From Heteronotia binoei (taxonomy: Eukaryota), in NCBI RefSeq assembly GCF_032191835.1, contig NC_083237.1, positions 17,174,001 to 17,238,000 on the forward strand: a stretch of 64,000 nucleotides of DNA, written 5' to 3'. The notes under the pieces were generated by a model. That model was not told the DNA's origin, searched no databases, and was given only the letters and a program-made list of their open reading frames with translations. How positions within the stretch are numbered: the first letter of the stretch is position 1; each line of letters starts with the position of its first letter. The position numbers and the translations under genes were made by a program. This document shows, piece after piece, positions 2,112-53,807 of this stretch.

Positions 2112-2683
2112 ATCAGGAAAGTATTCTCTAGTTTGACAGGCACCAGCCTCTCAGTAATTTAAGTGAATGACTGTTCTTATATTAAACATGCCCAATGACC
2201 TTTGAGATATGTACAAAGCACATACATTGAATTCTAGCTTGCTTGCTTCTTTGGTGTCTGTTTCTGCCAGATATGTTTCAAGCCTTCAGAGATGAGGGCT
2301 GGCACAGCCCGGCTATCTGTGAAGCTAACCATTCTCCACATTGGAAGACCGACAGCATGGTGAGTGGGTTTTTTTCACCATCTGATCACAAAGGTTTGAA
2401 GATTAAAGAAGATAATAAAGACTTCTGCTGTATTCCACAGGGACTGCTGTGCTCTCTTTGGATCTATTAAAATTGTTGTCCTTCGTGTCTTTGCATCCGA
2501 GGCACGTAATGAAAGAAAAACAAGAAAGGGATATACACGGCTGATGAAATCCTGCAAAGCGACAGCAGTCTAACTTTGCATAGGGTGACTTGGCATAGGG
2601 TTGTGATGAAAATGGCACACGAGTTTGCTTTTCAGGTTATAAAACGATTTGCTTTTGGGGTCTTGAAATACATAAAGGTGGAG

Positions 2684-2957: not shown

Positions 2958-3007
2958 TCTTGAAATACATAGCAATGAATTTTTCATCCAATGGTCATAG
3001 AAAGAGA

Positions 3008-6000
3008 GGTGACTGACCTGGAGAAGCAGAGACGGTCAGCAAGGCACTCGCAGAAGACTCTCGGAGACGTGTTAGTTGCGCCCCGCTCTGAACATGGCAG
3101 CCCCGTTGCTGCCAGGGAGTGTGAGGGTCGAGAGGGAACAGGGCACCGGGCTGAGGATAAGGGAAATGCGCCCTCAGAAGGGACCTCTTCTTCGGTTGGT
3201 GAGCGGGAATCCTTTCACACCAAGGAACCATCCCTGGGCGGGGAGAGAGGGAGGGTCTTGGTAGTTGGTGATTCGATCCTTAGGCAAGTAGACAGCTTGG
3301 TGGCAAAACCACATACTGACTGTATGGTGACTTGCCTGCCTGGTGCGACGGTAGTGGGCATTACGCGTGTAGTAGATAGGCTGATAGACAGTGCTGGGGA
3401 GGAGCCTGTGGTCGTGGTGCATGTTAGCACCAATGATGTGGGGAAATGCAGTCGTGAGGTCCTGGAGGAAAAATTTGGGCTGCTAGGTGGGAGACTTAAG
3501 GCCAGGACCTCCAAGGTAGCCTTCTCGGAAGTGCTACCTGTTCCACGTGCAAGGCTGGAGAGACAGGCACAAATTAGAAGTCTCAATGTGTGGATGAGAC
3601 GTTGGTGCAAGGAGGCAGGGTTTAAGTTTATTAGGCACTGGGATGCTTTCTGGAACAAGTGGGAGCTGTACCAAAGAGACGGTCTCCACTTGTCCCTGGA
3701 TGGAACCAGGCTGCTGGCACTTGTGGAAATTTCAGAAACTTGGTGGAATGAGGAGAATCAGTGGGACACGGTGATTCCTGGATATGTTATACTGGAAGGA
3801 TAGGGAGGGAAGGGTTGGAGATGGGGTAGCTCTGTATGTCAGAGAGGACATATGGTGCAGTAAGACTGAGGTCAGAGAACTGGACTCCCTTATAGAAATG
3901 CTTTGGGTTGAAATAGAGGGCCCAAAAGGCAATTTAACTATGGGAGTTTGTTATTGCCCACCAAATCAAAAGACAGAGTACGACTATAATATCTAGAAGG
4001 CTTAAAGATGGTGGCTAGATGTAAAAAGAGACTGAGTTTCTAGATGCTCTCAATGACTGAGCTATGGAGCAGATGGGCACAGAACCTACCAGGGGTGGGG
4101 CGATCCTGGATTTGGTCCTAAGTAATGCCCAAGACCTGGTGAGAGAAGTGATCACACCGCTTGGGAGCAGTGACCATAACGTTATTGATTTCACTATTTG
4201 TATAAATAGGGAGTTGCCTCAAAAGACCAGCACAACCATGTTTAACTTTAAAAGGGGTAAATTCTCTGACATTAGGAGGCATGTGAAGAGGAAACTGAAA
4301 GGAAAGGTAAATACAGTCAAAACCCTTGGGGAAGCTTGGAGGCTATTTAAAACTACAATCCTAGAAGCACAGATAAAATATATACCACAAGTTAGGAAAG
4401 GTACAAACAGGTATAAGAGAAGGCCTGCATGGGTAAAAAACAAAGTAATGGAAGCTATAAAAGGTAAGAAGGACTCCTTTAAGCGGTGGAAAGCTACTCC
4501 AAGTGAAATTAATAAAAGGGAACACAGGGAATGGCAATTGTTTTATTGTTCAACATGGCTTTTGCCACACCCTGTAAGCCACCCTGAGCCTGCCCCGGCG
4601 GGGAGGGCGGGGTATAAATAAAATTTTATTATTATTATTATTATTATTAATCAAATGCAAGACTGTGATCAAGCAGGGAAAAAGGGACTATGAGGAGCAT
4701 ATTGCAAAAAACATAAAGACCAACAATAAAAATTTCTTCAAATATATTAGAAGCAGGAAACCAGCCAGGGAGGCAGTGGGGCCCTTGGATGACCGAGGGG
4801 TCAAAGGATTACTGAAGCAGGATAGGGAAATGGCTGAGAAGCTAAATGAATTTTTTGCCTCTTCACTGTGAAAGATGAGAAGTGTTTGCCTGCTCCAGAA
4901 CCACTTCTATTGGAAGGGGTGCTGAAAGACATGAGCCAGATTGAGGTGGCAAGAGAGGAGGTCCTACAACTGATGGATGAATTAAAAACTAATAAGTCAC
5001 CAGGTCCGGATGGCATACATCCAAGAGTTCTGAAAGAACTCAAAGTTGAACTTGTGGATCTTCTGACAAAAATATGTAATCTTTCATTGTAATCTTTCAT
5101 TGAAATCTGCCTCTGTTCCTGAGGACTGGAAGGTAGCAAATGTCACCCCCATCTTTAAAAAGGGTTCCAGAGAAGATCCGGGTAACTACAGGCCAGTCAG
5201 TCTGACTTCAATACCGGGAAAGTTCGTAGAAACCATTATCAAGGACAGAATGAATAGGCACATTGATGAACATGAGTTATTGAGGAAGACTCAGCATGGG
5301 TTCTGTAAGGGAAGATCTTGCCTGACTAACCTGTTACATTACTTTGAGGGGGTGAACAAACATGTGGACAAAGGAGACCTGATAGATATTATTTACCTTG
5401 ACTTCCAGAAAGCTTTTGATAAAGTTCCTCATCAAAGGCTCCTTAGTAAGCTCGGGAGTCATGGAGTAAAAGGACAGGTCCTCTTGTGGATCAAAAACTG
5501 GCTAATTAATAGGAAGCAGAGAGTGAGTATAAATGGGCAGTCTTCATAGTGGAGGATGGTAAGCAGTGGAGTGCCGCAGGGCTCAGTACTGGGTCCCATG
5601 CTCTTTAACTTGCTCATAAATGATTTGGAGTTGAGAATGAGCAGTGAAATGGCCAAGTTTGCGGATGACACTAAATTGTTCAGGGTGGTGAGAACCAGAG
5701 AGGATTGTGAGGAACTCCAAAGGGATCTGTTGAGGCTGGGTGAGTGGGCGTCAATGTGGCAGATGAGGTTCAATGTGGCCAAGTGCAAAGTAATGCACAT
5801 TGGGGCCAAAAATCCCAGCTGCAAATACAAGTTGATGGGGTGTGAACTGGCAGAGACTGATCAAGAGAAAGATCTTGGGGTCATCGTAGATAACTCACTG
5901 AAAATGTCAAGTCAGTGTGCGATTGCAATAAAAAAAGGCTAACGCCATGCTGGGTATCATTAGGAAAGGAATTGAAAACAAATCAGCCAGTATCATAATG

Positions 6001-7075: not shown

Positions 7076-8290
7076 AGGGCTCAGAAAGGTAAAAACCTAA
7101 CCAGGACACTAACCTTAACCTAAACCTAACCCTACAGTAGACCAACAAAGAAGAAGAAGAAGATATTGGATTTATATCCCACCCTCCACTCTGAAGAGTC
7201 TCAGAGCAGCTCACAATCTCCTTTACTATCCTCCCCCACAACAGACACCCTGTGAGGTAGGTGGGGCTGGAGAGGGCCCTCACAGCAGCTGCACTTTCAA
7301 GGACAATCTCTGCCAGGGCTATGGCTGACTCAAGGCCATTCCAGCAGGTGGAAGTGGAGGAGTGGGGAATCAAACCCAGATAAGAGTCCGCACACTTAAC
7401 CACTACACCAAACTGGCTCTCCCTTAAAACGGAGAGAAGAGCTGCTTTAGACTGAATCAGGAAAGTATTATCTTGTTTGAAGGGCACCAGCCTCGCAGTA
7501 ATTTAAGTGCATGACTGTTCTTATATTAAACATGCCCAATGACCTTGGAGATATGTACAAAGCACATATATTGAATTCCAGCTTGCATGCTACTTTGGTG
7601 TCTGTTTCTGCCAGATACGTTTCAAGCCTTCAGAGATGAGGGCTGGCACAGCCCGGCTATTTGCTAAGCTAACCACTCTCCACATTGGTGAGTGTGTTTG
7701 AAGATTCAAGAAGATTTGAAGGTTTGAAGATTCAAGATTTGAATCTTGGTTTGAAGATTCAAGAAGATAATAACGACTTCAGCTGTATTCCACAGGGACT
7801 GCTGTGCTCTCTTTGGATCTATTAAAAATTGTTGTTTGCTTCCTTCGTGTCTTTGCATCTGAGGCACGTCATGGAAGGAAAACAAGAAAGGGATGGACAC
7901 GGCTGATGAAATCCTGCAAAGGGACAGCAGTCTAAAGCCAGATATTTCAATGGGGTTATTCTGGGTGACTTTGCATAGGGTTGTGATGAAAATGGCACAC
8001 AAGTTTGCATTTCAGGTTATAAAACGATTTGCTTTTTGGGTCTTAAAGTACATAAAGATGGAGAAAGGTAGTCCCCTGTGCAAGCACCAGTCATTTCTGA
8101 CTTTGGGGTGATGTCGCATCAGACTTTTCATGGGGTGATTTTGCCATTGCCTTCCCCAGTCATCTACATTTTACCCCCAGGAAGCTGGGTATTCATTTTA
8201 CCGACCTTGGAAAGATGGAAGGCTGAGTCAACCTTGAAATACATAGCAATGAATTTTTCATCCAATGGTCATAGAAAGAGAAACATACAA
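7076..8290. repeat. Partial duplicate (unit B) of 1904-3007 with no OR gene attached
   Basis: Collinear at roughly 90% with 1904-3007, including the same Sauria SINE insertion (8064-8237, shortened by a cttga-microhomology deletion). Confidence 0.85.
7149..7421 (-). mobile_element. Squam3-type tRNA-derived SINE
   Basis: Reverse complement of the GAGAGCCAGTTTGGTGTAGTGGTTAAGTGTGCGGACTCTTATCTGGG head with a (TTC)n tail; absent from the unit A paralog. Confidence 0.85.
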
Positions 8291-8789: not shown

Positions 8790-9348
8790 AGAACAAATTG
8801 GATTTATATCCCGTCCTCCACTCCAAATCTGAAAGTCTCAGAAAGCCTCACAATCTCCCAGTTTGGTGTCCTGGTTAAGTGCGCGGACTCTTAGCTGGGA
8901 GAACTGGATTTGATTCCCCACTCCTCCACTTGCAGCTGCTGGAATGGCCTTGGGTCAGCCATAGTTCTCGCAGAGGTGTCCTTGAAAGGGCAGCTGCTGT
9001 GAGAGCCCTCTTGGCCCCACCCACCTCACAAGGTGTCTGTTGTGGGAAAGGAAGATAAAGGAGATTGTGAACTGCTCTAAGACTCTGAAATTCGGAGTGG
9101 AGGGCGGGATATAAATCCAATATCTTCTTCTTCTTCTTCTTTTATCTTCCTCCCCCCACAACAGATACCCTGTGAAGTCTGTGGGACTGAAAGAGCTCTC
9201 GCAGAAACTACCCTTTCAAGGATAGTTCTCTGAGAGCTATGGCTGATCCAAGCCAATTCCAGCAGCTTCAAGTGGAGGAGTGAGGAATCAAACCTCTGGT
9301 TCTCCCAGACAAGAGACCATACACATAACCACTATACCAAACTGGCTC
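8790..9348. mobile_element. Squam3 SINE (+, 8858-9140) nested in an oppositely oriented Squam3 SINE (-, 8790-8857 + 9141-9348)
   Basis: The minus copy is split at caatctcc|tttatc, which is contiguous in the 7149-7421 copy. Confidence 0.8.
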
Positions 9349-10339: not shown

Positions 10340-11266
10340 TCAAACACGCCTTTGCAGCGCCCTGGCCACTGCCTCATGAACATCCTTGTTCCTCAGGGTA
10401 TAAATGATAGGGTTGAGAAAAGGGGTGACCACCACATAAAACAAAGCAATGTTTTTGTCCCGGTCTGAGGAAGCCGTTGATCGGGGAATTGCATATGTAA
10501 CAATGAGAGTCCCATAGAACACGGTAACTACGATGAGGTGGGAAGTACATGTGGAGAAGGCTTTGCGCAATCCAGTGACTGACTGTATTTGTAACACAGA
10601 GAACAGAATGACAACATAGGAGGTCACAACAACAATAATAGGAATCAGAAGGCCTACCCCAGCCAGCACAAAAATAACTGTCTGAGTGACGTGGGTATCG
10701 TCACAGGCAAGTTTCAAGACTAACGACATCTCACACATGAAGTGATCAATACGGTTGGGACCACAATAGGAGTGGTGAAAGGTACACCAAACATATATCG
10801 CACCCCCAAGGAAGCCTCCTGCCCAGCAACTGGATACAAGGTGCATCCGGCACCACCTGTCCATGACAACAGGATACAGCAGAGGTTGGCAAATGGCCAG
10901 GTAACGGTCATAGGCCATGACGGCCAGCAGAAAGCATTCAGCAGCACCAAAAGACAAGTAGACAAACAGCTGGGCAGCACAACGGGTGTAGGAGATGACT
11001 CCATTCCCAGCCAGGAGATGAGCCAGCATCTGTGGTTCTGTGCTGGTGACATAGCAGATCTCTAGGCCTGAGAGGTGCATGAGGAAATAATACATGGGGG
11101 TTTGGAGGTGGGTGTCAATTTGTACCAGCAGGATGACCACCAGGTTCCCCAGGATGGTAAGTGTGTAGATGAGAAACATCATGACAAAGAGTAGAAGCTG
11201 AGTCTTTCGTTGACTAGTGAGTCCCACCAAGATGAATTCTGTGACTGAGGTGAAGTTCTCATCCAT
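10340..11266 (-). CDS. Olfactory receptor (OR-1), intact, 308 aa
   Basis: MDENFT sequon; motifs GN, HLQTPMYYFL, MAYDRYLAIC, KAFSTCTSHL, PFLNPIIYTLRN. The true ATG is placed at 11266 by the acceptor 13 nt upstream; the 60-aa extension in the ORF track is intronic. Confidence 0.95.
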   Translation of the reverse strand: MDENFTSVTEFILVGLTSQRKTQLLLFVMMFLIYTLTILGNLVVILLVQIDTHLQTPMYYFLMHLSGLEICYVTSTEPQMLAHLLAGNGVISYTRCAAQLFVYLSFGAAECFLLAVMAYDRYLAICQPLLYPVVMDRWCRMHLVSSCWAGGFLGGAIYVWCTFHHSYCGPNRIDHFMCEMSLVLKLACDDTHVTQTVIFVLAGVGLLIPIIVVVTSYVVILFSVLQIQSVTGLRKAFSTCTSHLIVVTVFYGTLIVTYAIPRSTASSDRDKNIALFYVVVTPFLNPIIYTLRNKDVHEAVARALQRRV

Positions 11267-12264
11267 TGTGGCTTCCTGCCTGCATAAATAAGGACACCAG
11301 AGAGAGAAAGTTACATTTCTTGAGATCAGGTCAATTTTTCTTCTTCTTCTTCTTCTTTTCTTTTGAAGGCACTGTTTTGTCCCCGCCAACCTCAAGGAAG
11401 CACACAAGAAGCTCAACAAATTCAGCATTGTGATATCAGTCTCCATAGAAGTAATACTCTCTACTCAAATCCCCATGATTCTGACAGGTATAGTAGTTTG
11501 AGTGTCAGATTGAGATCTTTGAAACAGAGGTTCAGGTCTTCCTGAACAAAAGGCCTTAAATGGTGGGCAGAAGAACAATGAAGGGCAGATTTCATTCCTT
11601 AGAAATAAATTTATCAAAAAACAAGGTTCACTGCTTTAACCATGGTCAGCTTTCCAAATATACTAAGAAACAATAGTTTCCCTCAGCCCTCTTGCTCTCT
11701 GGGCGATCAGTTCTTGTTCAACTTAATTTCTGTCTTCTGGCATGCATGACAATATTACAAAGCAGAGATATGGGGAAGACAGGAGAATTACCTCAAATAT
11801 AATCCCCAAATTTTTTTGGTCTCTTAGGTGCTACTGCTCTGCCCTGAATGGCCCAGACTAGGGTTGGGTCCAAATGGCTAGTATAAGCCACCTCAGGGAC
11901 ATCCCATGACCAGACCAAAAAAGCACATTCAGATGCACACATTTGGATCCCATCCCACTCCTGCCCTTACCCCGTCCTTATCCGTCATCCTGCCGCCTCA
12001 AAAAGCTACTACATACAAAGTGGTAGCCAGAGGTCGTTTTGCAGAAAAATAGGTGGTGGAGCTCATTCAGAGATTGTTATGCAGCTGAACCTACTATTCA
12101 ATGGACAATGTGGGAAGGAGGAGATGGAACTCTCAGAAAGGTTCAGGGGCTGTTCTCCTGTGAGCTTCCGCTGAATCTGAGGCCTGGTGGTAGCAAATCG
12201 ATGAGGCACTTCTGGGGTGCCTTTCCCAGCCATCTGAATGGCCAGGGAGTGCCTGGGAAGCAGC

Positions 12265-12480
12265 ATATGAACATATGAAGCTGCCTTATACTGAATCAGA
12301 CCCTCAGTCCATCAAAGTCAGCAGCTACTCAGGGTCTACTCAGACTGTCAGCAGCTCTCCAGGTCTCAAGCTGAGGTTTTTCTCGCCTACTTGTCTGAAC
12401 CCTTTTTAGTTGGAGATGCCAGGGATTGAACCTGGGACCTTCTGCTTACCAACCAGATGCTCTACCAGTGAGCCACCATC
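12265..12480 (-). mobile_element. tRNA-derived SINE with CR1-like tail
   Basis: B-box-like gggattgaacctggg on the plus strand and a catatgaacatatgaagctgcc tail. Confidence 0.55.
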
Positions 12481-12951
12481 CCTCCTGTGCAGTCAGGCAC
12501 CTTAGCAGTGTGACTACTCCTCCAAGGTGCATGCAGCCCATTCCATGTTCCAACAGTTAGCTGTGCATCATCTGGCCACCCGGAGCATTTCTCTTTCTGC
12601 CAGTTTACTTCCAGAACAGGAGGCTGCCACCCCAAGCTGGCCATCTGTGCCCAACCTAGCAAAATAATTTCAGATATCTGGAGCTAAGCAAGGTCAGCCA
12701 TGCTCAATATTTGAATGGGAGACCACCAAGGAAGTTCAGGGTTGCTACACAGAGGCAGGCAGTGGCAAACCACCTCTAAATGTCTCTTGCCTTCAGAACC
12801 CTCAGCTGGCTATGACTTTAAGGCATTTTCTACCACAAAGTGGACTTTAGATGGTCCACTTGAATCCAGATGTTCTATTGCAGACCAACACAGCTTCCTT
12901 CTGAAACTGCCTTAACCAACATTTCATTAATCCACCTGTAACATTTTCAGG

Positions 12952-13232
12952 CGAAAGCCAGTTTGGTGTAGTGGTTAAGTGTGCGGACTCTTATCTGGGA
13001 GAATCGGGATTGATTCCCCACTTCTCCACTTGCACCTGCTGGAATGGCCTTGGGTCAGCCATAGCTCTCGCAGAATCTTCCTTGAAAGGGCAGCTGCTGT
13101 GAGAGCTCTCTCAGCCTCACCCACCTCACAGGGTGTCTGCTGTGGGCGGAGAAGATATAGGAGATTGTAAACCACTCTGAGTCTCTGATTCAGAGAGAAG
13201 GGCAGGGTATAAATTTGCAATTCTTCTTCTTC
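12952..13232 (+). mobile_element. Squam3-type SINE
   Basis: Head gccagtttggtgtagtggttaagtgtgcggactc and (TTC)n tail. Confidence 0.85.
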
Positions 13233-14909
13233 ATCAGATTATCATAAACTTCAAACAGCACTGCAAATCATGCATTCACACAGACTTCAGGGAGTGTCCC
13301 AGCCTCCCCCATCATTTTCAAATCAGTTTCCCTCAGGTTGAGCATAATCTTACCTTTGTGCTTTCTCCAGGTTTTCCTTCACATCCAAGGCAGATATTTT
13401 CATGTCACTGGTTTGAATAATCTGCTACTATGGCCAGAAGGGATTACGAAAGCTTTTTGATACAAGGTGTTTAAAGGTAAGGAGAAAACTCGTTTGATTG
13501 TCAGTGATTTCCAGACTCAGAGGCATCAACGTAAAGATGAGCCATGTTGGATTTCCTCTCACTTTTCTCAATTCCAAGTGACAACAATAATCAAAGTAGA
13601 GGTTTTCCCAGCACCTGATGTCCCTTAACTGGAGATGCCACTGATGGAAATTGGGATTTCCTCTGTGCCAAACTGATACTCTGCCATCTAGATCTCTCCT
13701 TACCTGGACCTTCCAGCCAAAACCTATATCATCTCTCCTATGATGTTCTTGCTTCTTTGAAAGACCTGTCTGGGGTAGCCGGAATATTACGAGGTTTGCT
13801 CCTCTGCTATGAGAACTCTATTTCCTCAGTTTACAGCAACAATAATGACCTGAAGACCCTCTGGAATTAATTACTCACTAGTACCCCAAAATAGAAAGAA
13901 GCTTTACATGTTGCTGGTCCAGAGCATGCTGCTTCATTTCTCAGTGCTGGAGATCAGAGTCTCTGTAAGGAGAGACAGAAGTCATGATGGCCACATTGGC
14001 CAAGGAGAGTCTGTCCCCTAGGGTTGAGAGAGCTAGAAACCTAACCTAATCCTAACCAGAGCCCTAGCCCTACAGCAGAATAACACACAGCTACCCTCAA
14101 AAATGAGGTTGAGATAAGAGCTGCTTTAAGTAGAACCCAGCAAGTACTACCCAGTTTGATTAGCAGCAGCTTCCCAGTACTTTAAGGGGATGACTTCCTT
14201 TGCACTAAAAACTCCCAGGGTATTCATTGAATTTGAGTTTGTATGCTACTTTGGTGTCTGTTTCTGCCAGGAATGTTGAATGCCTTCTGAAATGAGGGCC
14301 AGCACAGGCTGGCTACTTGCTAACTACTCTCCAGGTAAGAAGACAGACAGCATGGTGAGTGGATTTTTTGTTAGAGTATTTTGCACGCAGCAGAAGAGCT
14401 GAAGGAGAGGGACAGGCAAAACACAGGAATTAATAGACAAGAGAAACAGCTGTATTCAATGGTAGATATATTTACCAGTGAAAGTATCCAATATTCAGAG
14501 TCGTTGCCAGGCCAAGGTCATACACAGTAATCAGTACACACTTCAGTAGATAACAGTATACAGCAGTAAGTATACACAGCACGATCCAAGCACAGTAGCA
14601 TAGGATCCAACACCAGCAGTGATCGCTGCCACCCAGATAGCGGGCCTCACAGAACCCACAATCCTTACAGGCAGACTGAGCAGGCTCACTGAGCTTCCCT
14701 AAGTACACGTACCAATCATCAGGGTTGCATCAGCTCTGTGAGTCAGCACAAAGCCTAATTACAGGTGAGGTCATCCCACCTTACCTCAGTAACAGGTAAC
14801 AGCTGGATCATGATGCAGCATGACTCAGCATGACATTGCAGAAACAACATTACTATTACTAAGATGGAGTCAGTCAGCCATTTTAGGACTGAGTTCCAAC
14901 ATTCTCCTC

Positions 14910-17900
14910 TTAATAGTTCTGTTCGTTTCTCAATCCGAGCTTTTTACAGTGCTCATTATGCTTTTCCATAGTCTGGGGTTTCGTAAACATATCTGCTGTA
15001 TTGTGGCCAGTATCACAATACCTTATGTTTATCAACCCTTCCATGATACATGATCTGACATTCTGGTACCTTATGTCAGTGTATCTATTCCTTGTCTTTA
15101 CTCCTTCTGCTTTTGCAATCTCAATCACAGCTTGATTGTCTTCCAGAACTTCAACAGGCTTCTCTGCCTCTATATGCAGATCCTTTAGTAGCTGTCTAAA
15201 CCATTCTACCTCAGTACAAGCAGTAGAAAGGGCGCAGAACTCTGCTTCTGTGGTGGACAAGGCAACCACACGCTGCTTTTGTGTCTTCCAGCATACTAAT
15301 ACCTCTCCCAAATATATGGAAAGACCTGTTGTTGACTTTCTGGTTTCACAGTCACTTGCAAAACTTGCATCTGTATACACTTTCAGTGCTAGCTCCCCCC
15401 TAGGTTCGATATAAAGACACCAGTCAGCAGTGTTCTTTAAATATCTCAACACTCGCTTAGCAGCAATCCAGTGATTCTGCTTAGGGTTCTGGGTAGCTCT
15501 TGCCAACAGATTACAGGCTACTGATATGTCTGGCCGTGTCCAATTACTGATATAGCTCAGACTACCAATTAACGACCTGTACATTTCAACATTACATGGT
15601 GGGCTATCTGTAACATCATTTACAAAGCCAGTCACCATAGGGGTTGAAACAGTTTTGCAATCAGTCATCTTGTACTTGTCCAACAAATCTATGATTTTAG
15701 GTTTTTGTGACAGTTTAAAACCTTGTGTAGTTTTTGCAATATCTACACCCACATAGGTCTGTACAGTACCAAGATTCCTCAGTTTAAACTTCTTACTTAA
15801 GGCTGAAACAATATCATCTGTTTGTTTCTTTGTCTTGGTTAGAATCCCCAAGTCATCCACAAAAGTAAGAACAATACATCTTGTTTCACCACTTCCCTTG
15901 GTAAACACACATGGGTCAGCAATGCTCTGGGTAAACCCTAGCTGTTTAAGTGTACCCACTAGGCATTTTGACCATTGATGACCACTTTGCTTTAGACCAT
16001 ACAAGCTCTTATTTAGCAACCAGTATCCCTTTCCAGTACCAGGAATACCTTCTGGTCTCTTTAAATAAATTTGGTGCTCCAAATTAGCATTTAGGTATGC
16101 CACACAGACATCCAAATGGGTAAAATGGAGTTTTTCTCTAGCTGCCACAGTTAACGCAGTCAGAAGTGAACTGCTCTTTAACGTTGGAGCAAACACTTCG
16201 TCATAAGTCTCATTAGTCTGTCTGCAACCTTGTGCTACAAGCCTCGCCTTATACTTTTTTCCCCCAGACTGGTCTGTTTTCACCTTGTATACCCATCTAG
16301 TGCCTATGGGTTTTACACCAGCAGGTACAGTATCAGTCTCAACATAAACATTTAAACGTTTCAGGGAAGAAAGTTCATCGTCCATAGCAGCCTTCCAGTT
16401 ACACTGCTCTTCCATGGACAAAGAGAAAATGTCAGTATATTTCTCAGGCTCATGTATAGCAGACATTACAGGACTAAATCTCTCAGGAGCTCTTCTTTCA
16501 CGTGTAGATCTCCTCAATGCAGGCTCATCAGTTGGCACATTCCTCCCGGATGATTCCTCACGAGTAGGCTTCTCCTCCATCTCCTCGTCAGGCATCTCTT
16601 CTTTTGGGGTTAACTCAGCCGCCTCTCCCTCCTCTGGGTTGCTAGGCATCGAGCTGACTTGTAACCGGATTCCTTGGTCACCCTCAGGACAGAACGCTGG
16701 CGATTGGGTGCAACGATCCCAGCCCTCTGATCTCTCCAGAAACGTGGCTGAAGCACTAATCACCACCTCACGACTGTCGAGTGTGCCAAAACGATAACAG
16801 CTCCCGTTTCTCTCATACCCGAGAAACCTCATACGTCTAGCCTTCAGTTGGCCTTTACGTCTGAGCTGTTGAGGAATATGAACAAAAGCTGTAACTCCAA
16901 ATACATGCAAATTTGCCAAGTTAGTTACCTTGTCATGCCATAGGCTTGCCGGTATTTTGCCAGTAGATGAACACCAAACTCTGTTCAGGTTGTAGTTGGC
17001 ACAGCACATAGCCTCTGCCCAAAATCTCCAGGGCATATCTGCATCACGTAACATACACTGGCACATGTCTTGCAATGTACGGCCTCTTCTCTCACAAAAA
17101 GCATTATGGGTAGGTCTGTACGGAGCAGTCAAACGGTGCTCAATCCCAAGCTCTGCAAACAAACTTTGAAAACGTTTATTAACAAATTCCGAGCCTCTAT
17201 CAGAAATAATGCATGCAGGCACATTTCCAGTTTTTCTCTTAACAAACCTTAGCCAATTCTGCATATTTTGAAAGGTTTCAGTTTTAGCTTTCAACAGGTA
17301 AACAAAACCATACCTTGAATAGTGATCTTCTATACTTAAGACATATTTGGCCCCGCCCACTGACTCCTTAAAGGGCCCTATCAGGTCTAAGAACACTAGG
17401 TCAAGAGGTTTCTTACTAGTAAATTTACTTGGAGTACGCACAGGAGCTTTTGTAGACTTCACAAGCTTGCAGATTTCACAGTCAAGAAATTCCTTGCAAG
17501 GTTTAAGATTAATACCTTCTGCCTGTTCAACAGTCTTCTTTAGAGCAGGAAAACCAGCATGGCCTAATTTCCTGTGTAAAAGATGACAGCAATTATCATG
17601 CACTGGTTTATTTACACAGACGTTATTACACGTTTGTACCTTGGTATGCAAGAAGTATAAATCTTCCTTCAACATTGCCTTTACACACACACCGTCTTTG
17701 GTCCTCAGCTCACAGCACGAGGTGTCAAATTGCAGTTTGAAACCTTCCCTGCACAGAGCAGACACAGACAGCAGATTCATCTTAAGTGAAGGAACAAAAC
17801 CCATATGCAGCTCCTTCCTTAGGCTTGGCAGGAACACTTTCCCTCTGCCAAAAACAGTTGCTTTAACTCCATCTGCCAAAACAACGGACTGGTTATCAAC

Positions 17901-18860
17901 AGGTGTGTAAGAAGTAAACAAACTCCTCTCTCTACAGAGGTTCTCCGACGCTCCACTGTCAATTAGGAAAGATTGAGTGTGGTTAGTTGACTTACCAGTA
18001 GTAACGAGATGCACATTACCACTCTTATCAGCAGACCTCATTTCAGACCGTCTCTCTTTCCCTTTCTGGCCTTGACAATTCCTAAACAAATGTCTAGATG
18101 AGCCAGACCGGAAGCATTTCTTCCTTACAGCCATTACATTACCTGTTTGACAGTCAGGATCCTCCTTAACAGTAAATCCACTGCCCCTCTCTGGCTTACA
18201 GACAGGCTTTCTCTCCGCACGTAGAGAGGAATTGGACTGTCTCTTGCCATATTCATCAAGAAGCCGTCCAGTTATGACGTTCATGGTTGACCCTGTCTCA
18301 GGCAAACCCTCCAGGCTCGTTATCACAGCGTCATATGATGCATCTAAGGAACTTAAAAGTATGCACACCTCCTGTGATTCAGAAAACATTTGGTTATGCT
18401 CTCTTAGCTCTAGAAACATCCTACGCATAGACTCTATATGAGATAACATATCTGCATTAGCTGCCAGCCTGGTATGCAGAAGCTTCTTCACCAAACGAAT
18501 CTGAGAACCGACAGTTCCTCGGACGTAAATTTCCTTCAAAGCATTCCAGCAGTCATGAGCCTTCTCCAGTCCTGCTATATGCACCAGCTGGGAGTCGTCT
18601 AGAGAAAGACCTATTAAAGACAAAGCCTTAACATCCTTTTTACGCAAAAGGTCTACAGCTTTTCTGTCCTCAGCAGCTTCCTCTGCCTCCTCAGCAGCCT
18701 CCTCTTCACCCTCCGGGCTACTGATAGGAGCAGCCACCACCTCCCACAGCTCTTGGTGCTTTAATAACAGACTGACCTTCTGGGACCACGTAGCATAGTT
18801 AGTCCCATTCAGCTTAGTAATGCTGAGCCCAGAGAAGGAAACAACATTTGCAGCTTCCAT
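14910..18860 (-). CDS. gag-pol: Copia Gag-Pol polyprotein, 1316 aa, uninterrupted
   Basis: Gag (LNGTNYATW; UBN2-like), knuckle CFRSGSSRHLFRNC, protease LIDSGAS, integrase HRKLGH..CEIC with D(LDLIGP)-D(SDRGSEF)-E(CERRGR), RT FVDD, RNase H YTDAS/TEAE/EDNQA/ADMFTK. Confidence 0.97.
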   Translation of the reverse strand: MEAANVVSFSGLSITKLNGTNYATWSQKVSLLLKHQELWEVVAAPISSPEGEEEAAEEAEEAAEDRKAVDLLRKKDVKALSLIGLSLDDSQLVHIAGLEKAHDCWNALKEIYVRGTVGSQIRLVKKLLHTRLAANADMLSHIESMRRMFLELREHNQMFSESQEVCILLSSLDASYDAVITSLEGLPETGSTMNVITGRLLDEYGKRQSNSSLRAERKPVCKPERGSGFTVKEDPDCQTGNVMAVRKKCFRSGSSRHLFRNCQGQKGKERRSEMRSADKSGNVHLVTTGKSTNHTQSFLIDSGASENLCRERSLFTSYTPVDNQSVVLADGVKATVFGRGKVFLPSLRKELHMGFVPSLKMNLLSVSALCREGFKLQFDTSCCELRTKDGVCVKAMLKEDLYFLHTKVQTCNNVCVNKPVHDNCCHLLHRKLGHAGFPALKKTVEQAEGINLKPCKEFLDCEICKLVKSTKAPVRTPSKFTSKKPLDLVFLDLIGPFKESVGGAKYVLSIEDHYSRYGFVYLLKAKTETFQNMQNWLRFVKRKTGNVPACIISDRGSEFVNKRFQSLFAELGIEHRLTAPYRPTHNAFCERRGRTLQDMCQCMLRDADMPWRFWAEAMCCANYNLNRVWCSSTGKIPASLWHDKVTNLANLHVFGVTAFVHIPQQLRRKGQLKARRMRFLGYERNGSCYRFGTLDSREVVISASATFLERSEGWDRCTQSPAFCPEGDQGIRLQVSSMPSNPEEGEAAELTPKEEMPDEEMEEKPTREESSGRNVPTDEPALRRSTRERRAPERFSPVMSAIHEPEKYTDIFSLSMEEQCNWKAAMDDELSSLKRLNVYVETDTVPAGVKPIGTRWVYKVKTDQSGGKKYKARLVAQGCRQTNETYDEVFAPTLKSSSLLTALTVAAREKLHFTHLDVCVAYLNANLEHQIYLKRPEGIPGTGKGYWLLNKSLYGLKQSGHQWSKCLVGTLKQLGFTQSIADPCVFTKGSGETRCIVLTFVDDLGILTKTKKQTDDIVSALSKKFKLRNLGTVQTYVGVDIAKTTQGFKLSQKPKIIDLLDKYKMTDCKTVSTPMVTGFVNDVTDSPPCNVEMYRSLIGSLSYISNWTRPDISVACNLLARATQNPKQNHWIAAKRVLRYLKNTADWCLYIEPRGELALKVYTDASFASDCETRKSTTGLSIYLGEVLVCWKTQKQRVVALSTTEAEFCALSTACTEVEWFRQLLKDLHIEAEKPVEVLEDNQAVIEIAKAEGVKTRNRYTDIRYQNVRSCIMEGLINIRYCDTGHNTADMFTKPQTMEKHNEHCKKLGLRNEQNY

Positions 18861-18987
18861 CTCTGCTACTTATCACTGGACACCTGGGCAACTTGGCAGT
18901 CTGCCTCCGTCTCTTCCAAAACACTGTGTTGCCTCCTCTGTCTTCAGAACAGCAGCACCTCTAGAAACACTGGGAGCTCTGGGAGCT

Positions 18988-19001
18988 CTGGGCCCATAAC
19001 C
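18988..19001 (-). promoter_or_regulatory. Primer-binding site complementary to the anticodon-stem region of initiator tRNA-Met (half-tRNA priming)
   Basis: The minus strand reads LTR-CA TT GGTTATGGGCCCAG; the plus-strand CTGGGCCCATAACC matches the tRNAiMet anticodon arm. Confidence 0.9.
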
Positions 19002-19864
19002 AATGTTAGAGTATTTTGCACGCAGCAGAAGAGCTGAAGGAGAGGGACAGGCAAAACACAGGAATTAATAGACAAGAGAAACAGCTGTATTCAATGGTAG
19101 ATATATTTACCAGTGAAAGTATCCAATATTCAGAGTCGTTGCCAGGCCAAGGTCATACACAGTAATCAGTACACACTTCAGTAGATAACAGTATACAGCA
19201 GTAAGTATACACAGCACGATCCAAGCACAGTAGCATAGGATCCAACACCAGCAGTGATCGCTGCCACCCAGATAGCGGGCCTCACAGAACCCACAATCCT
19301 TACAGGCAGACTGAGCAGGCTCACTGAGCTTCCCTAAGTACACGTACCAATCATCAGGGTTGCATCAGCTCTGTGAGTCAGCACAAAGCCTAATTACAGG
19401 TGAGGTCATCCCACCTTACCTCAGTAACAGGTAACAGCTGGATCATGATGCAGCATGACTCAGCATGACATTGCAGAAACAACATTACTATTACTAAGAT
19501 GGAGTCAGTCAGCCATTTTAGGACTGAGTTCCAACATTTTTCACCACCTGATCTCAAAGGTTTGACGATTCAGGAGGATAATAAAGATGTCAGCTGCATT
19601 CCACAGGGATTGCTGTGCTCCCTTTGCGTCTATTAATAATTTGCTGTTGGTTTCTTCCATACTTTGCATCAGAAGCCCTTAATGAAACAAAGACAAGAAA
19701 GGAGGGACACTGTTGGTTCAATCCTGCAAAGTTACAGTGTCAAATGCCTTTATGTCAGTAGAGATAATCTACACATGATTGTAATGAAAATTGCAGAAGT
19801 TGGGTTTTGGGTTGGTTATATTGCAGTTGGCTTCTTCGGTCACAAAATACAAAGGAATCCGTTT

Positions 19865-22790
19865 TCTTGTTTTAAACATTTTTTTCATAACATATGGTAA
19901 CAATTTCTGTTAATAACTTCTTTTCATCTATCCCATATGCTTCTTTCTAATCACCCCTCCCCCCATTCCTTAACCCCCACCAGTGTTATTTACTCAAAAT
20001 ACTAACATTAAAAGGTACCCTTAATTACTAAGAACTAAAATTAATATTCTTCTTTCTTCTAAAGTTTAATCATTATCAAAAATTGTCCAAAGTCCTTTTA
20101 CTTTCCACTCATCTTCTACATAACTTCTAAATTTTTTCCACTCCCTTTTAAAATCTTCTAAATCATAGTCTCTTAAAGTTCTTGTTAATTTGTCCATCTC
20201 ACTCCATGTCATAACTTTTACAATCCAATCCCATTTTTCTGATATTTTTCTTGCTTCCATAACTGCGCATATAGTGTCCTAGCAGCTGAAAGCAAGTACC
20301 AAATTATAGTTCTATCTTCTTTTGGAAATTTTTCCATTTGTAATCCCAACAGAAAAGTCTCTGCAACTTTCTTGAATTCATATCCCAAGATCCTAGAAAT
20401 TTCTTGTTGGATCATCTGCCAATACTTTTTCACTCTTTCACAAGTCCACCACATATGGAAGAAAGAACCTTCATGTTTTTTGCATTTCCAACATATGTCT
20501 GGCATCTTGCTATTCATCTTTGCCAATTTTTTAGGAGTCATATACCATCTATACATCATTGTAAAACAGTTCTCTTTAATACTCTGATATGCTGAAAGTT
20601 TCATAGAGTTTTTTCATAAATATTCCCATGTATCCATCTGTATTTCTTTATTTACATTTATTGCCCATTTAATCATTTGAGATTTCACTACACTAATTTT
20701 TCATTATTCCCAAACAGAACTTTTTCCATTTCTGTTTGCCCTCGTCTTATTCCTTCAGTTTTAATATCATTTTCCACCAAACTCTTTATTTGCTGCATTT
20801 GAAACCAATTGTATTTGTTATTCAACTCCACAGCAGTTTTCAATTCTATTTTGCCACTTTGTATTTTTAATCATTGATTGTATGACAGCCATTTTTCCTC
20901 ACCTGTCTCAGCTGTTATTTTTATCACTTCTGCTGGCACTATCCATAATGGTTTTCTTTCATCACCATATTTCTTATATTTCATCCAGGTATTCAACAAA
21001 TTATTTCTTATATAATGGTGAGAGAAAAAACTATCCATCTTTTTCTTCCCATAATACATATAAGCGTGCCAGCCGAATTTATTTCCGTGACCTTCCAACA
21101 CTAAAGGTTTTTTATTCAACAGCGTCACCCAATCTTTTATCCACACTAAACAAACTGCTTCATGATATAATTTTAAATCTGGTAATTGGAATCCTCCTCT
21201 TTCTTTAGCATCTATTAAAACTTTCATTTTAATCCCAACCCATACAAATTCCGAAATCTTCCTTTGCCATTTGTTAAATTGTTCACTGTCCTTCACAATT
21301 GGAATAGTTTGAAGCAAATACATTATTCTCGGCAAAATATTCATCTTAATTGCAGCTATTCTTCCAAGCAATGACAAGTTAAGCTTATTCCATTTTATCA
21401 TATCTTCATCCATTTTACGCCATAGCTTTTCATAGTTATTTTTGAACAGGTCAATATTCTTCATTGTTATTTCCACACCCAAATATTTTACTTTAGAGGT
21501 AACTTCACATCCTGTTAGTCTCTGCAACTCCTTTTGTTTATTTACTTGCATATTTTTACATAAAAATTTGATTTTTCTTTATTAACATAAAATCTCATCA
21601 GTTCTCCATATTCTTGTATTTTAGCTAACAACAAAGGTGTTACTTGTGCAGGATTTTCATTTATAAACATTATATCATCTGCAAATGCTCTATATTTGTA
21701 AATAAATCCTTTAACTCTCAACCCTTCTATTTCTTTATCATCTTGTATTTGCATCAACAAAATTTCAAGAGTCATTATAAACAACAAAGGTAAAAGAGGA
21801 CAACCTTGTCTTGTACCTTTGCTGATTATCATTTCATCCATAAGATCTGCATTTATACATAACCTTGCATGTTGTTCAGTATATATTGCCTTTATCATTC
21901 TTATAAAGTTTTTCCCCAACTCTATTTTCTCCATTACTGCAAACATAAAGTCCCAGTTCAAATTGTCAAAAGCTTTCTCTGCATCCACAAAGAATAATGT
22001 AACTTCCTTCTCTGGATGTCTTTCATGATATTCTACAATATTTACAACAGTTCTAATATTGTCTCTTATTTGCCTTTTAGGAAGAAATCCCGCTTGGTCT
22101 TCCTTTATGAAATTTATCAAATATTGTTTAAGTCATTCTGTATATATCTTATAGTCATTATTTAGTAATGAAATTGGTCTATAGTTCTTTACATTCGTGA
22201 CATCTCTATCTTCCTTAGGAATCAAAGAAATTACAGCTTCCTTCCATGTATTTGGTATTTTCCCTTTTATTCTTATCATATTCATCAATTTTTGAAGTTT
22301 CGGTACTAATTCTTCTTAAAAAATTAAAAAAAAATTATTACATGTTCTTTTAAGTCTGTCCCTTCTTCTTCAGGTACTCCTCTCAGACGTATTTGTGTCT
22401 CCATCAATTTACAGTCATGGATTGTTATTTTTTCTTGCATTTTTAATAAGGTGGAATCCTGGAGTTTAACTTTCCCTTCTACCTCCTGCACTTTTTTGAC
22501 ACCACCACTGTTTTATTTCTAATCTCTTCCATTTCTTTTTTAAAGTCCTCAATATCTTTTTAAAGTTCTTTTTTGCAAGCATTTATCATCTTTTCCACCT
22601 CTTTCATCATCCTAGCTTCCATTGCTTCTGACTAATCTTGCATCTTCTCCAATGAGGCAGCCCTTGCATGGGTTACCTTTGAATCTAACATTAAAAAAAC
22701 AGCGAAAAGTTTGATATCACCAAATTCAATTTCAACTATCAGGTTTGATAGATTAGAACTTACCCTTTCAAATGAGCGTAATTTCACCGT
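19865..22790 (-). mobile_element. L1-clade LINE, decayed, with an internal deletion joining ORF1 to the ORF2 RT region
   Basis: ORF1 coiled coil and IRLRGVPEEEG (about 22330-22690). ORF2 KNYRPISLLN, QAGFLPKRQIRDNIR, DAEKAFD, GTRQGCP, FADD, and C-terminal CWKC..HMWWTC. The endonuclease is missing. Confidence 0.9.
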
Positions 22791-23039
22791 CCTCCAACCT
22801 TCCCAGGCTCAGATATTAATAGGCAGTTGCCTAGAGCACCAGGAGGGTGGGGATGCCAAATTAGACTCCCACCTTCCTGGTGCCCCAGGTAAGCTCCTAG
22901 TTTGCCTGCCCCCTCCGCCCACCCGCTGCTGCCCACCCATCCTTTCTTTCCCTTCCTGTCCCTTCGCCTTCCTCCCCCACCCCGGTGTGATAACAGTGTG
23001 CCATGCCTGAGTCCTGCTGGCTGCGACATGGTGTGCGAA

Positions 23040-23292
23040 CATGACAATGATATGTTTGTGTTGCGGGTGTCATTGCATGCAGCCTTCACATCATTGGTAA
23101 CTCACAAAGTGGTTGATGAAGCAGGAACCACAGAAGGGATGCTGAAAGGTGAAGCTCACACATATTGCAGCGATTATAAAGCCAACTAGCCAGCAAGCTG
23201 AGGCAAGCTGGAACTGATGTCATTTTCCCATGGCTGCGGCTGTGTGCCATGTTTGCTGGGATTGTCATTCTGGGACCCCTTTCAGTCATCTT
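23040..23292. pseudogene. Scrambled OR fragment: minus-strand TM4-TM5 piece (23040-23247) fused to the adjacent codons on the plus strand (23249-23292)
   Basis: 23040-23247 aligns to 26725-26941; 23249-23292 reads MFAGIVILGPLSVI on the plus strand. Confidence 0.8.
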
Positions 23293-26398: not shown

Positions 26399-26935
26399 TC
26401 ACAAAACCCATCTTCACAGCACCTTGGCCATCGCTTCATTGACATCCTTGTTCCACAGAGTGTAAATGAGAGGATTCAGAAGAGAGGTGACCACGAGGTA
26501 AAACAGCCATTTGTTTTTCATTTTGAGGAGATGTCCCTGACTGAGGCCTAATGTATACAAAGATGATGGCACCATAGAACAAAGTGACCACTACTAAGTG
26601 GGAGCTGCATGTAAAGAAGGCCTTGCGGAGTCCAGTGGCTGACCGCATTTGTAACATGGAGAAGAGGAAGAGGCCATAGGAGGTCAAAATGACTGAAAGG
26701 GGTCCCAGAATGACAATCCAAGCAAACATAACAATGATATGTTGTGTGATGTGGGTGTCATCGCATGCTGACTTCAACACCATTGGCAACTCATAGACAA
26801 AGTGGTTGATGCAGCAGGAACCACAGAAGGGATGCTGAAAGGTGATGCTCACACATATTCCAGCAATTATAAAGCCAACTAGACAGCAAGCTGAGGCAAG
26901 TTGGAACTGGCGTCATTTTCCCATGGCTGTAGCTG
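26399..26935 (-). pseudogene. OR pseudogene (OR-2psi): only TM4-TM7 remain, plus a 2-bp deletion near TM7
   Basis: Highly similar to OR-4 (32545-33070); aaaacacagcc has become aaaacagcc. The 5' half is replaced by the 3' flank of OR-3 at a ggctgt junction. Confidence 0.9.
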
Positions 26936-27064
26936 TGTGCCACAGTTAACATCGAAGCTGCCTGGAAATGTTATAGTCAGTGTAAAAACCCGGCATTAAA
27001 GAATCTTATTCACATGAGTCATCCTTGCCAAATGGTTAGACTAATGTCAAATCAACTGTCACCT

Positions 27065-27997
27065 TCACAAACCCCATCTTCGTAGTACCTTGGCTACTGC
27101 CTCATGGACATCCTTGTTCCGCAGGGTGTAAATGAGAGGATTCAGAAGAGGGGTGACCACAAGGTAAAACACAGCAATCTGCTTCTCATTGTCAGCAGAT
27201 TTTCCTATTTGGGGTATAATGTAGTTAAGGGTGATGGTGCCAAAGTACATAATAACCACCAATAAAGGGGACCCACATGTAGAGAAAGCCTTGCGAAGTC
27301 CACTGACTGACCGTATTTGCAACACAGAGATCAGAATGAGGCTGTAGGAGGTCAAGATAACTGAAAAGGGTCCCACAATGACAATTACTGCAAACATAAC
27401 GATGATGTATTCTGTGATGTGGGTGTCATCGCATGCAAGCTTCAACACCATTGGAATCTCACAGACAAAGTGGTTGATGCAGCAGGAGCCACAGAAAGGG
27501 TGCTGAAAGGTGATGCCCACACATATTGCAGCAATTATAAAGCCAGCTAGCCAACAAGCTGCGGCAAGCTGGAACTGGCGCCATTTTCTCATGGTTGTGG
27601 TGTATACTAAGGGATGGCAGATGGCTAAGTATCGATCGTAAGCCATGACTCCTAGCAGAACGGCTTCAACAGAACCCAGAGACAAAGACATGTACATCTG
27701 TAAGGCACAGTGTATTAAGGACAATTCTGCATGGCCAATTAGAAGGTGGGTCAGCATTTGGGGTACATTGGTGGTGACAAAAGAGATCTCCACACCTGAA
27801 AGATGTGAGAGGAAAAAATACATGGGGGTGTGGAGGTGGGAGTCCAATTGTACTAGCACTATGACCCCTAGATTCCCAACAAGGATAAATATGTACATGA
27901 GGAGAATGATCACAAAGAGGAGAATCTGTGTGTTGCGGTCACTGGAGAGTCCTACTAAGATGAATTCTGTTGTAGAGGTGAGGTTTTTCACCTCCAT
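27065..27997 (-). CDS. Olfactory receptor (OR-3), intact ORF, 310 aa, with H-to-P change in the KAFSTCxSH motif
   Basis: NLT sequon; LHTPMYFFL, MAYDRYLAIC, KAFSTCGSP, PLLNPLIYTLRN. Confidence 0.95.
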   Translation of the reverse strand: MEVKNLTSTTEFILVGLSSDRNTQILLFVIILLMYIFILVGNLGVIVLVQLDSHLHTPMYFFLSHLSGVEISFVTTNVPQMLTHLLIGHAELSLIHCALQMYMSLSLGSVEAVLLGVMAYDRYLAICHPLVYTTTMRKWRQFQLAAACWLAGFIIAAICVGITFQHPFCGSCCINHFVCEIPMVLKLACDDTHITEYIIVMFAVIVIVGPFSVILTSYSLILISVLQIRSVSGLRKAFSTCGSPLLVVIMYFGTITLNYIIPQIGKSADNEKQIAVFYLVVTPLLNPLIYTLRNKDVHEAVAKVLRRWGL

Positions 27998-29174: not shown

Positions 29175-29450
29175 GAAGGAGGAGGAGGAGATTGGATTTA
29201 TACCTCACCCTTCACTAACCAAAGGAGTTTCAGAGCAGTTTACAAATCTCCTTCCCCTCCTCACAACAGAAACCCTGTGAGGCAAGTGGGGCTGAGTGAG
29301 CTCTCCCAGAGCTGCTCTTGAGCAGAACAGCCTTGAGAGTTGTGGCTGACCCAAGGCCACATCAGCAGGTGTATGTGGAGGAGTGGGGAATCAAACCTGG
29401 TTCTTCCAGATAAGAGTCCGCACACTTAACCACTACATAAACTGGCTCTC
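29175..29450 (-). mobile_element. Squam3-type SINE
   Basis: Homologous to 7149-7421. Confidence 0.8.
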
Positions 29451-32544: not shown

Positions 32545-33477
32545 TCATAAAACCCATCTTCGCAGCACCTTGGCCACTGCTTCATGGACATCCTTGTTCC
32601 GCAGGGTGTAAATGAGAGGATTCAGAAGAGGAGTGACCACAAGGTAAAACACAGCCATTTGTTTTTCATTTTCAGGAGATGTTCCTGACGGAGGCCTAAT
32701 GTAAACAAAGATGATGGCACCATAGAACAAAGTGACCACTACTAAGTGGGATCCACATGTAAAGAAGGCCTTGCGTACTCCAGTGACTGACCCCATTTGC
32801 AACACGGAGAAAAGAATGAGGCCATAGGAGGTCAAGATGACTGAAAAGGGTCCCAGAATGACAATCCCTGCAAACATAACAATGATATGTTGTGTGATGT
32901 GGGTGTCATCGCATGCAAGCTTTAACACCATTGGTATCTCGCAGACAAAGTGGTTGATGCAGCAGGAACCACAGAAAGGGTGCTGAAAGGTGATGCTCAC
33001 ACATATTGCAGCAATGATAAAGCCAGCTAGCCAACAGGCTGAGGCAAGCTGGAGCTGCCGCCATTTTCCCATGGCTGTAGCATATACTAAGGGATGGCAG
33101 ACAGCTATGTAACGATCATAAGCCATGATTGCCAGCAGAATTGCTTCGACAGAACCCAGAGCCAAAGTCATGTACATCTGTAATGCACAACGGACTAAGG
33201 ACAATTCTCCATGCCTCGTTAGAAGGTGATTCAGCATCTGGGGTACAGTACTTGTGATAAAACCGATCTCCACACTTGAAAGGTTTGAGAGGAAGAAATA
33301 CATGGGTGTGTGGAGGCGAGAGTCGACTTGTACCAGCACTATGACCCCCAGGTTTCCCAGAAGGGTAAAGATGTACATTAGGAGAATTAGCACAAAGAGA
33401 AGAATTTGTGTCTTGCGGTCACTGGTTAGCCCTACCAAGATGAATTCTGTTGTAGCAGTGAAGTTGTCAACCCCCAT
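32545..33477 (-). CDS. Olfactory receptor (OR-4), intact, 310 aa
   Basis: MGVDNFT; LHTPMYFFL, MAYDRYIAVC, KAFFTCGSHL, PLLNPLIYTLRN. Start set at 33477 by the conserved acceptor. Confidence 0.95.
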   Translation of the reverse strand: MGVDNFTATTEFILVGLTSDRKTQILLFVLILLMYIFTLLGNLGVIVLVQVDSRLHTPMYFFLSNLSSVEIGFITSTVPQMLNHLLTRHGELSLVRCALQMYMTLALGSVEAILLAIMAYDRYIAVCHPLVYATAMGKWRQLQLASACWLAGFIIAAICVSITFQHPFCGSCCINHFVCEIPMVLKLACDDTHITQHIIVMFAGIVILGPFSVILTSYGLILFSVLQMGSVTGVRKAFFTCGSHLVVVTLFYGAIIFVYIRPPSGTSPENEKQMAVFYLVVTPLLNPLIYTLRNKDVHEAVAKVLRRWVL

Positions 33478-33613
33478 TCTGAGCTTCTTCCTGCAGAGCA
33501 AGAGAAACATTCAGTCCAAAACATTATCTCACAGTAGAGAAACTGCTTTCAAAAAAAAACATTCCTTGTGTTGAAGGGCAAAAAGACCATTCCATTGAAC
33601 CCAAACCAATTTC

Positions 33614-53756: not shown

Positions 53757-53807
53757 TGCTGATCACAGGCAAATGGAGATTCCCTTGAACCAGTGTCACA
53801 CTTAATG

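Follow-up and report, generated by a model that had tools for sequence, protein, structure and literature searches.

In this study, we analyzed a stretch of 64,000 nucleotides from the gecko Heteronotia binoei (NCBI RefSeq assembly GCF_032191835.1, contig NC_083237.1, positions 17,174,001 to 17,238,000 of the forward strand), hereafter called the window, in which a complete Ty1/copia retrotransposon occupies positions 14369-19536. All coordinates are positions in this window. The element is 5168 bp long and lies on the minus strand, so it is read from right to left. A preliminary description made from the sequence alone had presented it as an intact, apparently very recent Ty1/copia element in an amniote, and had proposed a still-active or recently invading family, possibly acquired horizontally. 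Here, the structure of the element, its insertion site, its sister copies in sequencing reads and its relatives are used to assess these proposals.

Structure of the copia element

The element is bounded by two long terminal repeats (LTRs) of 533 bp each, the 3′ LTR in element orientation at 14369..14901 and the 5′ LTR at 19004..19536 (reading 19536..19004), both on the minus strand. In an exact comparison, their 533 bp were 100% identical throughout; the stretch of perfect agreement is in fact 535 bp long, as two extra T from flanking or internal sequence also agree. Both LTRs open with TG and close with CA, and directly outside them lies a target site duplication (TSD) TTTTT, on the left at 14364..14368 and on the right at 19537..19541.

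The signals for reverse transcription adjoin the LTRs on the inner side. The polypurine tract (PPT) AAGAGGAGAA at 14902..14911 (minus strand, reading 14911..14902) abuts the 3′ LTR and overlaps the TAA stop codon of the open reading frame (ORF). The primer binding site (PBS) at 18988..19003 (minus strand, reading 19003..18988) abuts the 5′ LTR and consists of TT followed by GGTTATGGGCCCAG. These 14 bases presumably complement the anticodon arm of the vertebrate initiator tRNA-Met, covering the 5′ side of the stem, the loop with CAU and two bases on the 3′ side. Between the LTRs, one long gag-pol ORF (14910..18860, minus strand, reading 18860..14910) encodes 1316 amino acids plus a stop, with no internal stop or frameshift over 3948 bases; 97-99% of its length aligns with full-length copia polyproteins. 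No further copy and no solo LTR of this copia family was found within the 64-kb window.

Domains and catalytic residues of the polyprotein

The Pfam domains follow one another along the single ORF in the order DUF4219 and Retrotran_gag_2, Pol_BBD, gag_pre-integrs, rve, SH3_retrovirus and RVT_2. This corresponds to Gag, protease, integrase, reverse transcriptase (RT) and RNase H, with the integrase ahead of the RT as in Ty1/copia elements. The RT itself is of the copia type (RVT_2, PF07727; E 2.1e-60, score 204.8 bits, cut-off 31.6). The LTR ends TG..CA and a target duplication of 5 bp likewise agree with copia, the length of the duplication depending on the T count (5 + 5).

For the assessment of single residues, the polyprotein was aligned with 22 full-length relatives, the comparators being 30-54% identical. 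The catalytic residues of protease, integrase, RT and RNase H were all located in invariant or near-invariant columns of this alignment. All domains are encoded on the minus strand. Gag (DUF4219 and Retrotran_gag_2, residues 17-211; E 2e-25 and 2e-8) is encoded at 18228..18812, and the aspartic protease (Pol_BBD, residues 298-374; E 2e-12) with its D301-S-G motif, in which the D301 column is invariant in the 22 relatives, at 17739..17969. The integrase at 17058..17660 was matched by Pfam gag_pre-integrs, rve and rve_3 and has the HHCC residues H429/H434/C461/C464 and the DD35E residues D492/D554/E590, all seven in invariant columns; its C-terminal SH3-like domain (PF25597, residues 644-711; E 6e-16) follows at 16728..16931. 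In the RT at 15633..16328 (RVT_2, residues 845-1076; E 2e-60), D1002 and D1003 of the motif FVDD (1000-1003) are invariant in the relatives. The RNase H residues D1164/E1205/D1241/D1290, placed by alignment with the closest relatives, are encoded at 14976..15398 and stand in four columns that are invariant in the 22 relatives.

On the anatomy of the element, the preliminary description proved accurate throughout. It had claimed two 533-bp LTRs without a difference visible by eye, a 5-bp TSD, PBS, PPT, a single ORF of 1316 amino acids and all catalytic residues (DSG in the protease, DDE in the integrase, VDD in the RT, D/E/D/D in the RNase H), and each of these was recovered here, so that its central statement of a complete Ty1/copia element in an amniote, here a gecko, stands.

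Insertion event and age

As a homopolymer, the TTTTT target duplication is weak evidence when taken alone. However, about 1.3 kb of the flanking sequence (13231-14368 and 19537-19737) has an older duplicate at 1121-2565 with 67-79% identity and a further partial duplicate near 7432-7927, so this segment, which may be a segmental duplicate of the receptor cluster or an old interspersed repeat, is present two to three times in the window; the copia element sits within one of these, the others serving as empty sites. In the older duplicate, both flanks are joined: the paralogous empty site at 2222..2565 (plus strand, about 79% identity to both flanks) is contiguous across the insertion point, and the alignment passes straight through a single uninterrupted T-run exactly at the site of the element. 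Because the paralogous duplicate runs uninterrupted across this point, the insertion is genuine. The element was inserted into a T-run with a 5-bp duplication, and the insertion event is shown by this comparison. A duplication of 5 bp is the length typical of copia and Ty1.

With 0 differences in 533 paired LTR sites, the 95% upper bound of LTR divergence is 0.56%. If the neutral rate is assumed to be 2, 1 or 0.5 × 10^-9 per site per year, this corresponds to age bounds of 1.4, 2.8 and 5.6 million years (Myr), respectively, and the median age estimates are 0.3-1.3 Myr at the same assumed rates. The insertion is young, as justified by the LTR identity, and to this extent the preliminary description is supported. 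Identical LTRs and an uninterrupted ORF are also what a currently mobile element would have, although they bound the age only.

Sister copies in sequencing reads

To the element plus 400 bases of each flank, we mapped a same-species raw RNA run (X7), a run that is probably DNA (X2) and two sets of RNA contigs (X1 and X4); X4 is labelled as a second organism (B), and X1, X2 and X4 are contig runs. Since the element was covered throughout and both flanks were at zero depth in the mapped RNA and DNA runs, the reads report on the family rather than on this locus. By identity to this copy, 957 reads of X7 were at ≥99%, 1728 at 95-99% and 603 at 90-95%, and at many positions the majority of the reads departs from this copy. 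Loose read ends at the LTR edges continue into a number of distinct sequences and represent insertions elsewhere. A multi-copy and diverse family, with its sequences present in RNA libraries, is thereby shown. The depth drops from the LTR and 3′ part toward the part encoding Gag and protease, in X2 as well as in the RNA run.

The differences between this copy and the reads are mainly silent. Among the 34 best-supported single-base differences in the ORF, 20 are synonymous, and from residue 845 onwards, that is in RT and RNase H, 17 synonymous stand against 4 non-synonymous differences (21 best-supported differences); these counts cover the best-supported rows only and the ratio is indicative, not exact. 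Non-synonymous differences are concentrated in the acidic linker between integrase and RT. Because the differences lie mainly at silent sites, the copies appear to have diverged while replicating as working elements. Together with the identity range of 90-100%, this synonymous bias argues for a long-resident family with several active lineages and not for a single fresh burst. The family may still be mobile.

Two length differences distinguish this copy from others. In reads of other copies, the LTR contains a tandem duplication of 38 bp (14544-14581 and 19179-19216), which is lacking here, and most other copies have three additional in-frame bases, CTC, after 16580, within the acidic stretch that links integrase and RT, as seen in reads and contigs of all four runs. 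In addition, about 175 molecules of the RNA library, which is unstranded, end at a sharp boundary at 14505..14506 (corresponding to 19140/19141 in the second LTR). Possibly, this boundary separates R from U5 and marks the 3′ end of the transcript; no AATAAA or ATTAAA was present 10-35 nt upstream of it.

Relatives and probable clade

Two word-based searches, one with the polyprotein and one with RT-RNase H, and an exhaustive HMMER search in 1.84 billion protein representatives gave no donor and no named sister. The best full-length relative, from a metagenome contig, is 41% identical, the best fragment match is 54% identical over RT-RNase H, and the nearest named relatives are from arthropods and a nematode; look-alikes in the ESM Atlas were generic RVT_2 clusters only. 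We attribute this absence of close relatives to a database gap, as the transposon ORFs of squamates are rarely annotated, rather than to novelty. A quick maximum-likelihood tree based on RT-RNase H places the gecko element in a five-member clade with a support of 99 in the Shimodaira-Hasegawa-like approximate likelihood ratio test (SH-aLRT). This clade is nested in a well-supported animal copia clade of 17 members (SH-aLRT 98) with an element from Anopheles darlingi and a Trichuris-labelled one, and outside of it are three separate plant groups and fungal sequences.

According to a metazoan Copia survey of 2025, Lepidosauria carry only the Mtanga clade of Copia, with a record number of more than 100 clusters, 90% of them from squamates, and no Copia is present in birds, mammals, turtles and crocodilians (PMC11889832). 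The gecko element most likely belongs to this clade, judging by its host group, which is the same, and by the RT-RNase H tree: the reference element of Mtanga is from Anopheles gambiae, and the Anopheles darlingi element in the tree clade of the gecko element points to membership. The main text of the survey names no gecko (PMC11889832).

Copia elements are well documented in other squamates. In Anolis, population data contain 1962 polymorphic Copia insertions (PMC7561263), and in hydrophiine snakes, Copia subfamilies are expanding and expressed (PMC8872380). The corn snake (Pantherophis guttatus) harbors one Copia element of 5832 bp with 85 near-identical copies, which caused two independent color mutations and is possibly active today according to the authors (PMC4657000, PMC11948899). 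Like the gecko element, the Copia behind the amelanistic (OCA2) and Stripe (CLCN2) mutations is a full-length squamate Ty1/copia element with Gag, integrase, RT and RNase H, and it is multi-copy (85 copies with >95% identity) and evidently mobile in recent time. It differs in its snake host and its length (5832 bp versus 5168 bp). Moreover, its mobility is demonstrated by two insertions, each with a phenotype, whose sequences are one nucleotide apart; nothing of this kind was seen for the gecko copy. The Copia families of Anolis carolinensis (e.g. Copia-6 in Repbase) are lizard copia elements as well, with many polymorphic and hence recent insertions, in a host of a different family. A search of the accessible literature found no paper on copia in geckos specifically. 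The premise of the preliminary description that copia is rare in amniotes therefore needs to be divided: it holds for birds and mammals, in which copia is near-absent (PMC4350176), but fails for squamates, given the elements of Anolis, hydrophiine snakes and corn snake and the diversity of Mtanga. What is new is the element in a new host family, and not a new kind of element, as copia is ordinary in lizards and snakes.

Proposed priming and replication

A fragment of the initiator tRNA-Met cut in the anticodon arm primes reverse transcription of Drosophila copia and yeast Ty5 and of other Copia lineages too (PMC5371799, PMC10886601). The PBS of the gecko element would resemble those of Drosophila copia and Ty5 in pairing with the anticodon arm of this tRNA and not with its 3′ end. 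All three elements have a single gag-pol ORF, a TSD of 5 bp and an integrase that precedes the RT, and their sequences are only distantly related. Independent support comes from two distant relatives of the gecko element, L001 and L002, in which GGTTATGGG stands directly after CA upstream of the ORF. By analogy, half-tRNA priming, which would involve cleavage of the primer, is proposed for this element.

From the anatomy of the element and known copia biology, we infer the following replication cycle. A transcript running from LTR to LTR would be translated into the single polyprotein of Gag, protease, integrase, RT and RNase H. Minus-strand DNA would be primed by the 5′ fragment of initiator tRNA-Met, its anticodon arm paired with the PBS beside the 5′ LTR, and the plus strand by the PPT. 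Finally, the integrase would insert the DNA copy with a 5-bp duplication, in this case within a T-run.

Neighboring genes and repeats

The element is located between the receptor genes of an olfactory-receptor cluster and inside none of them. Five intact olfactory-receptor ORFs are present in the window, all on the minus strand, at 10340-11446, 27065-27997, 32545-33510, 42391-43326 and 53808-54893 (Pfam 7tm_4, E 1e-43 to 1e-49). For the receptor at 27065-27997, the next match after Heteronotia binoei itself is from Paroedura picta (83%), followed by other geckos. One H. binoei protein model (P0121, 511 amino acids) seems to be a fusion of two receptors. A segment of about 210 bp at 23034-23249 recurs at about five places with 72-89% identity (26722-26942, 32869-33077, 27389-27600, 42715-42926 and 54147-54347); four of the five other copies lie within receptor ORFs, and the one at 26722-26942 is just outside of one. 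The segment at 23034-23249 may be a fragment of a receptor gene, a pseudogene or an interspersed repeat.

Several further features were noted. An ORF of 270 amino acids at 2991-3803 (plus strand) contains a GDSL/SGNH esterase domain (PF13472, E 2e-9). Such a domain is typical of ORF1 in long interspersed elements (LINEs) of the CR1/L2 type, and a fairly well-preserved LINE may thus be located there. A repeat of about 280 bp with 78-85% identity, probably a short interspersed element, was found at 12956-13235 and at least six other places, e.g. at 53491-53760, 8858-9136, 7150-7429, 44397-44632 and 29196-29450, and near the copy at 12956-13235 a tRNA-Thr-like sequence is present at 12411-12483 (minus strand). 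The region 20001-22000 has a GC content of 0.31 and a strong negative GC and AT skew, with two adjoining minus-strand ORFs at 20871-21551 and 21542-22120, the former of which gave no Pfam match.

Discussion

The locus very probably holds a genuine young insertion of a complete Ty1/copia element, most likely of the Mtanga clade, which is one copy of a resident, multi-copy, diverse and vertically inherited family that has long been transposing under selection for working RT and RNase H.

Several observations weigh against this reading or parts of it, and the first of them concern the polyprotein. At the Gag zinc knuckle (residues 249-262; 18075..18116, minus strand), the copy reads C-x2-S-x4-H-x4-C, with Ser at residue 252 for the second Cys ligand of CX2CX4HX4C, which is present in 22 of 22 relatives; Pfam did not detect zf-CCHC in the polyprotein, and in this respect the gecko element differs from Ty5 and the copia of Drosophila. 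As in nucleocapsid mutants of retroviruses, the packaging of RNA could suffer when a zinc ligand is lost. The knuckle is usual but not universal in the copia lineage, as Ty1 functions without any knuckle. Furthermore, 9 of the 80 columns that are invariant in the relatives differ in this copy, among them positions beside the catalytic residues of protease, integrase and RNase H. At least one of the changes, K1259R, is common to other family copies, the prevalent read variant in that codon being synonymous, and because the comparators are only 30-54% identical, lineage-specific change may fairly explain most of the nine departures. With one zinc ligand missing from the Gag knuckle and nine of 80 invariant positions changed, this copy may rely on other copies for its mobility. 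Should the changes be private to its sub-lineage, it might have transposed recently with the help of sister lineages, whose proteins would have carried out its packaging and reverse transcription in trans; we regard such a scenario as unlikely.

A second group of observations concerns expression. At positions 14622, 15180, 15609 and 16414, 0 of 24-71 RNA reads carry the base of this copy, so transcripts from it were not seen in X7 at these diagnostic sites, whereby the individual that was read may differ from the assembled one. As its bases are absent from the reads at these sites, the copy belongs to a minor sub-lineage, and its own expression was not seen. Since read depth takes a similar course along the element in the RNA run and in X2, which is probably DNA, the RNA profile may partly mirror copy number, and some carry-over of DNA is possible. 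The preliminary description had regarded the element as still active, which was not upheld for this copy: the LTRs bound its age only to about 1.4-5.6 Myr, and the RNA reads did not show the alleles of this copy.

Thirdly, neither flank is covered by any read or contig of the four runs, which leaves the assembly as the basis for both junctions and for the identity of the LTRs. This touches on an insertion older than it appears, with LTRs homogenized by gene conversion or by assembly or polishing of the repeat. The junctions and LTRs are without independent read support in these runs, a multi-copy family favors mis-polishing, and the window contains runs of N. However, an ORF free of stops and frameshifts over 3948 bases would not be kept by an old neutral copy. 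In addition, the 5.2-kb element is below the typical size of long reads, by which the 68-Mb contig suggests that the assembly was made, and lineage-specific variants such as the one at 14622 are common to both LTRs. An older insertion is therefore considered quite improbable.

The last point against the reading is the assignment to Mtanga, which was derived from the literature and one Anopheles-labelled sequence. As to the origin of the family, recent horizontal transfer into the gecko lineage, with the family in its first burst, has to be weighed against vertical inheritance. Such a burst would agree with the identical LTRs and the intact ORF, and the run labelled as organism B has contigs that are 95-99% identical to the element, some of them ≥99%. 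The corn-snake Copia is confined to one young clade and is read by its authors as a recent appearance (PMC11948899), and the Mob DNA survey considers it possible that the sarcopterygian Mtanga elements originated by horizontal transfer (PMC11889832). In contrast, the reads of the host species are 90-100% identical to this copy, and where they differ in RT-RNase H, the differences are mainly synonymous, which indicates long residence and several replicating lineages, and the 1.84 billion protein representatives contain no candidate donor, the best being 41% identical. Organisms A and B were sequenced in one study, and B may represent a closely related organism or carry-over between samples. We thus judge recent transfer to be very improbable, and neither of the two proposals in this direction was supported: a recent invasion disagrees with the identity range, the synonymous bias and the several other insertion loci of same-species reads, and for a horizontal acquisition no donor was found, with protein relatives at no more than 41% (full-length) or 54% (RT-RNase H fragment).

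A contaminant or a chimeric misassembly outside the gecko genome, for which the arthropod and nematode origin of the nearest named protein relatives might speak, was rejected as extremely improbable on account of the paralogous empty site that is contiguous across the insertion point, the clean TSD inside host DNA and the presence of the family in independent same-species runs from three studies, the distant protein matches being explained by databases largely without squamate transposon ORFs.

Given a young copy of a resident family as the favored reading, current knowledge is not overturned by the element. It contributes a complete copia element with clear boundaries from a gekkonid and is in line with lepidosaurs keeping a lively set of Mtanga-type copia elements, unlike birds, mammals, turtles and crocodilians. 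The exchange of Cys for Ser in the Gag knuckle poses a concrete and checkable question, namely autonomy versus mobilization in trans. If mobilization by sister lineages were true, a network of trans-complementing copia lineages would exist in a vertebrate, within a species complex that includes hybrid parthenogens. And if the family is mobile in Heteronotia binoei, its sexual and parthenogenetic lineages would allow a comparison of transposon dynamics with and without sex.

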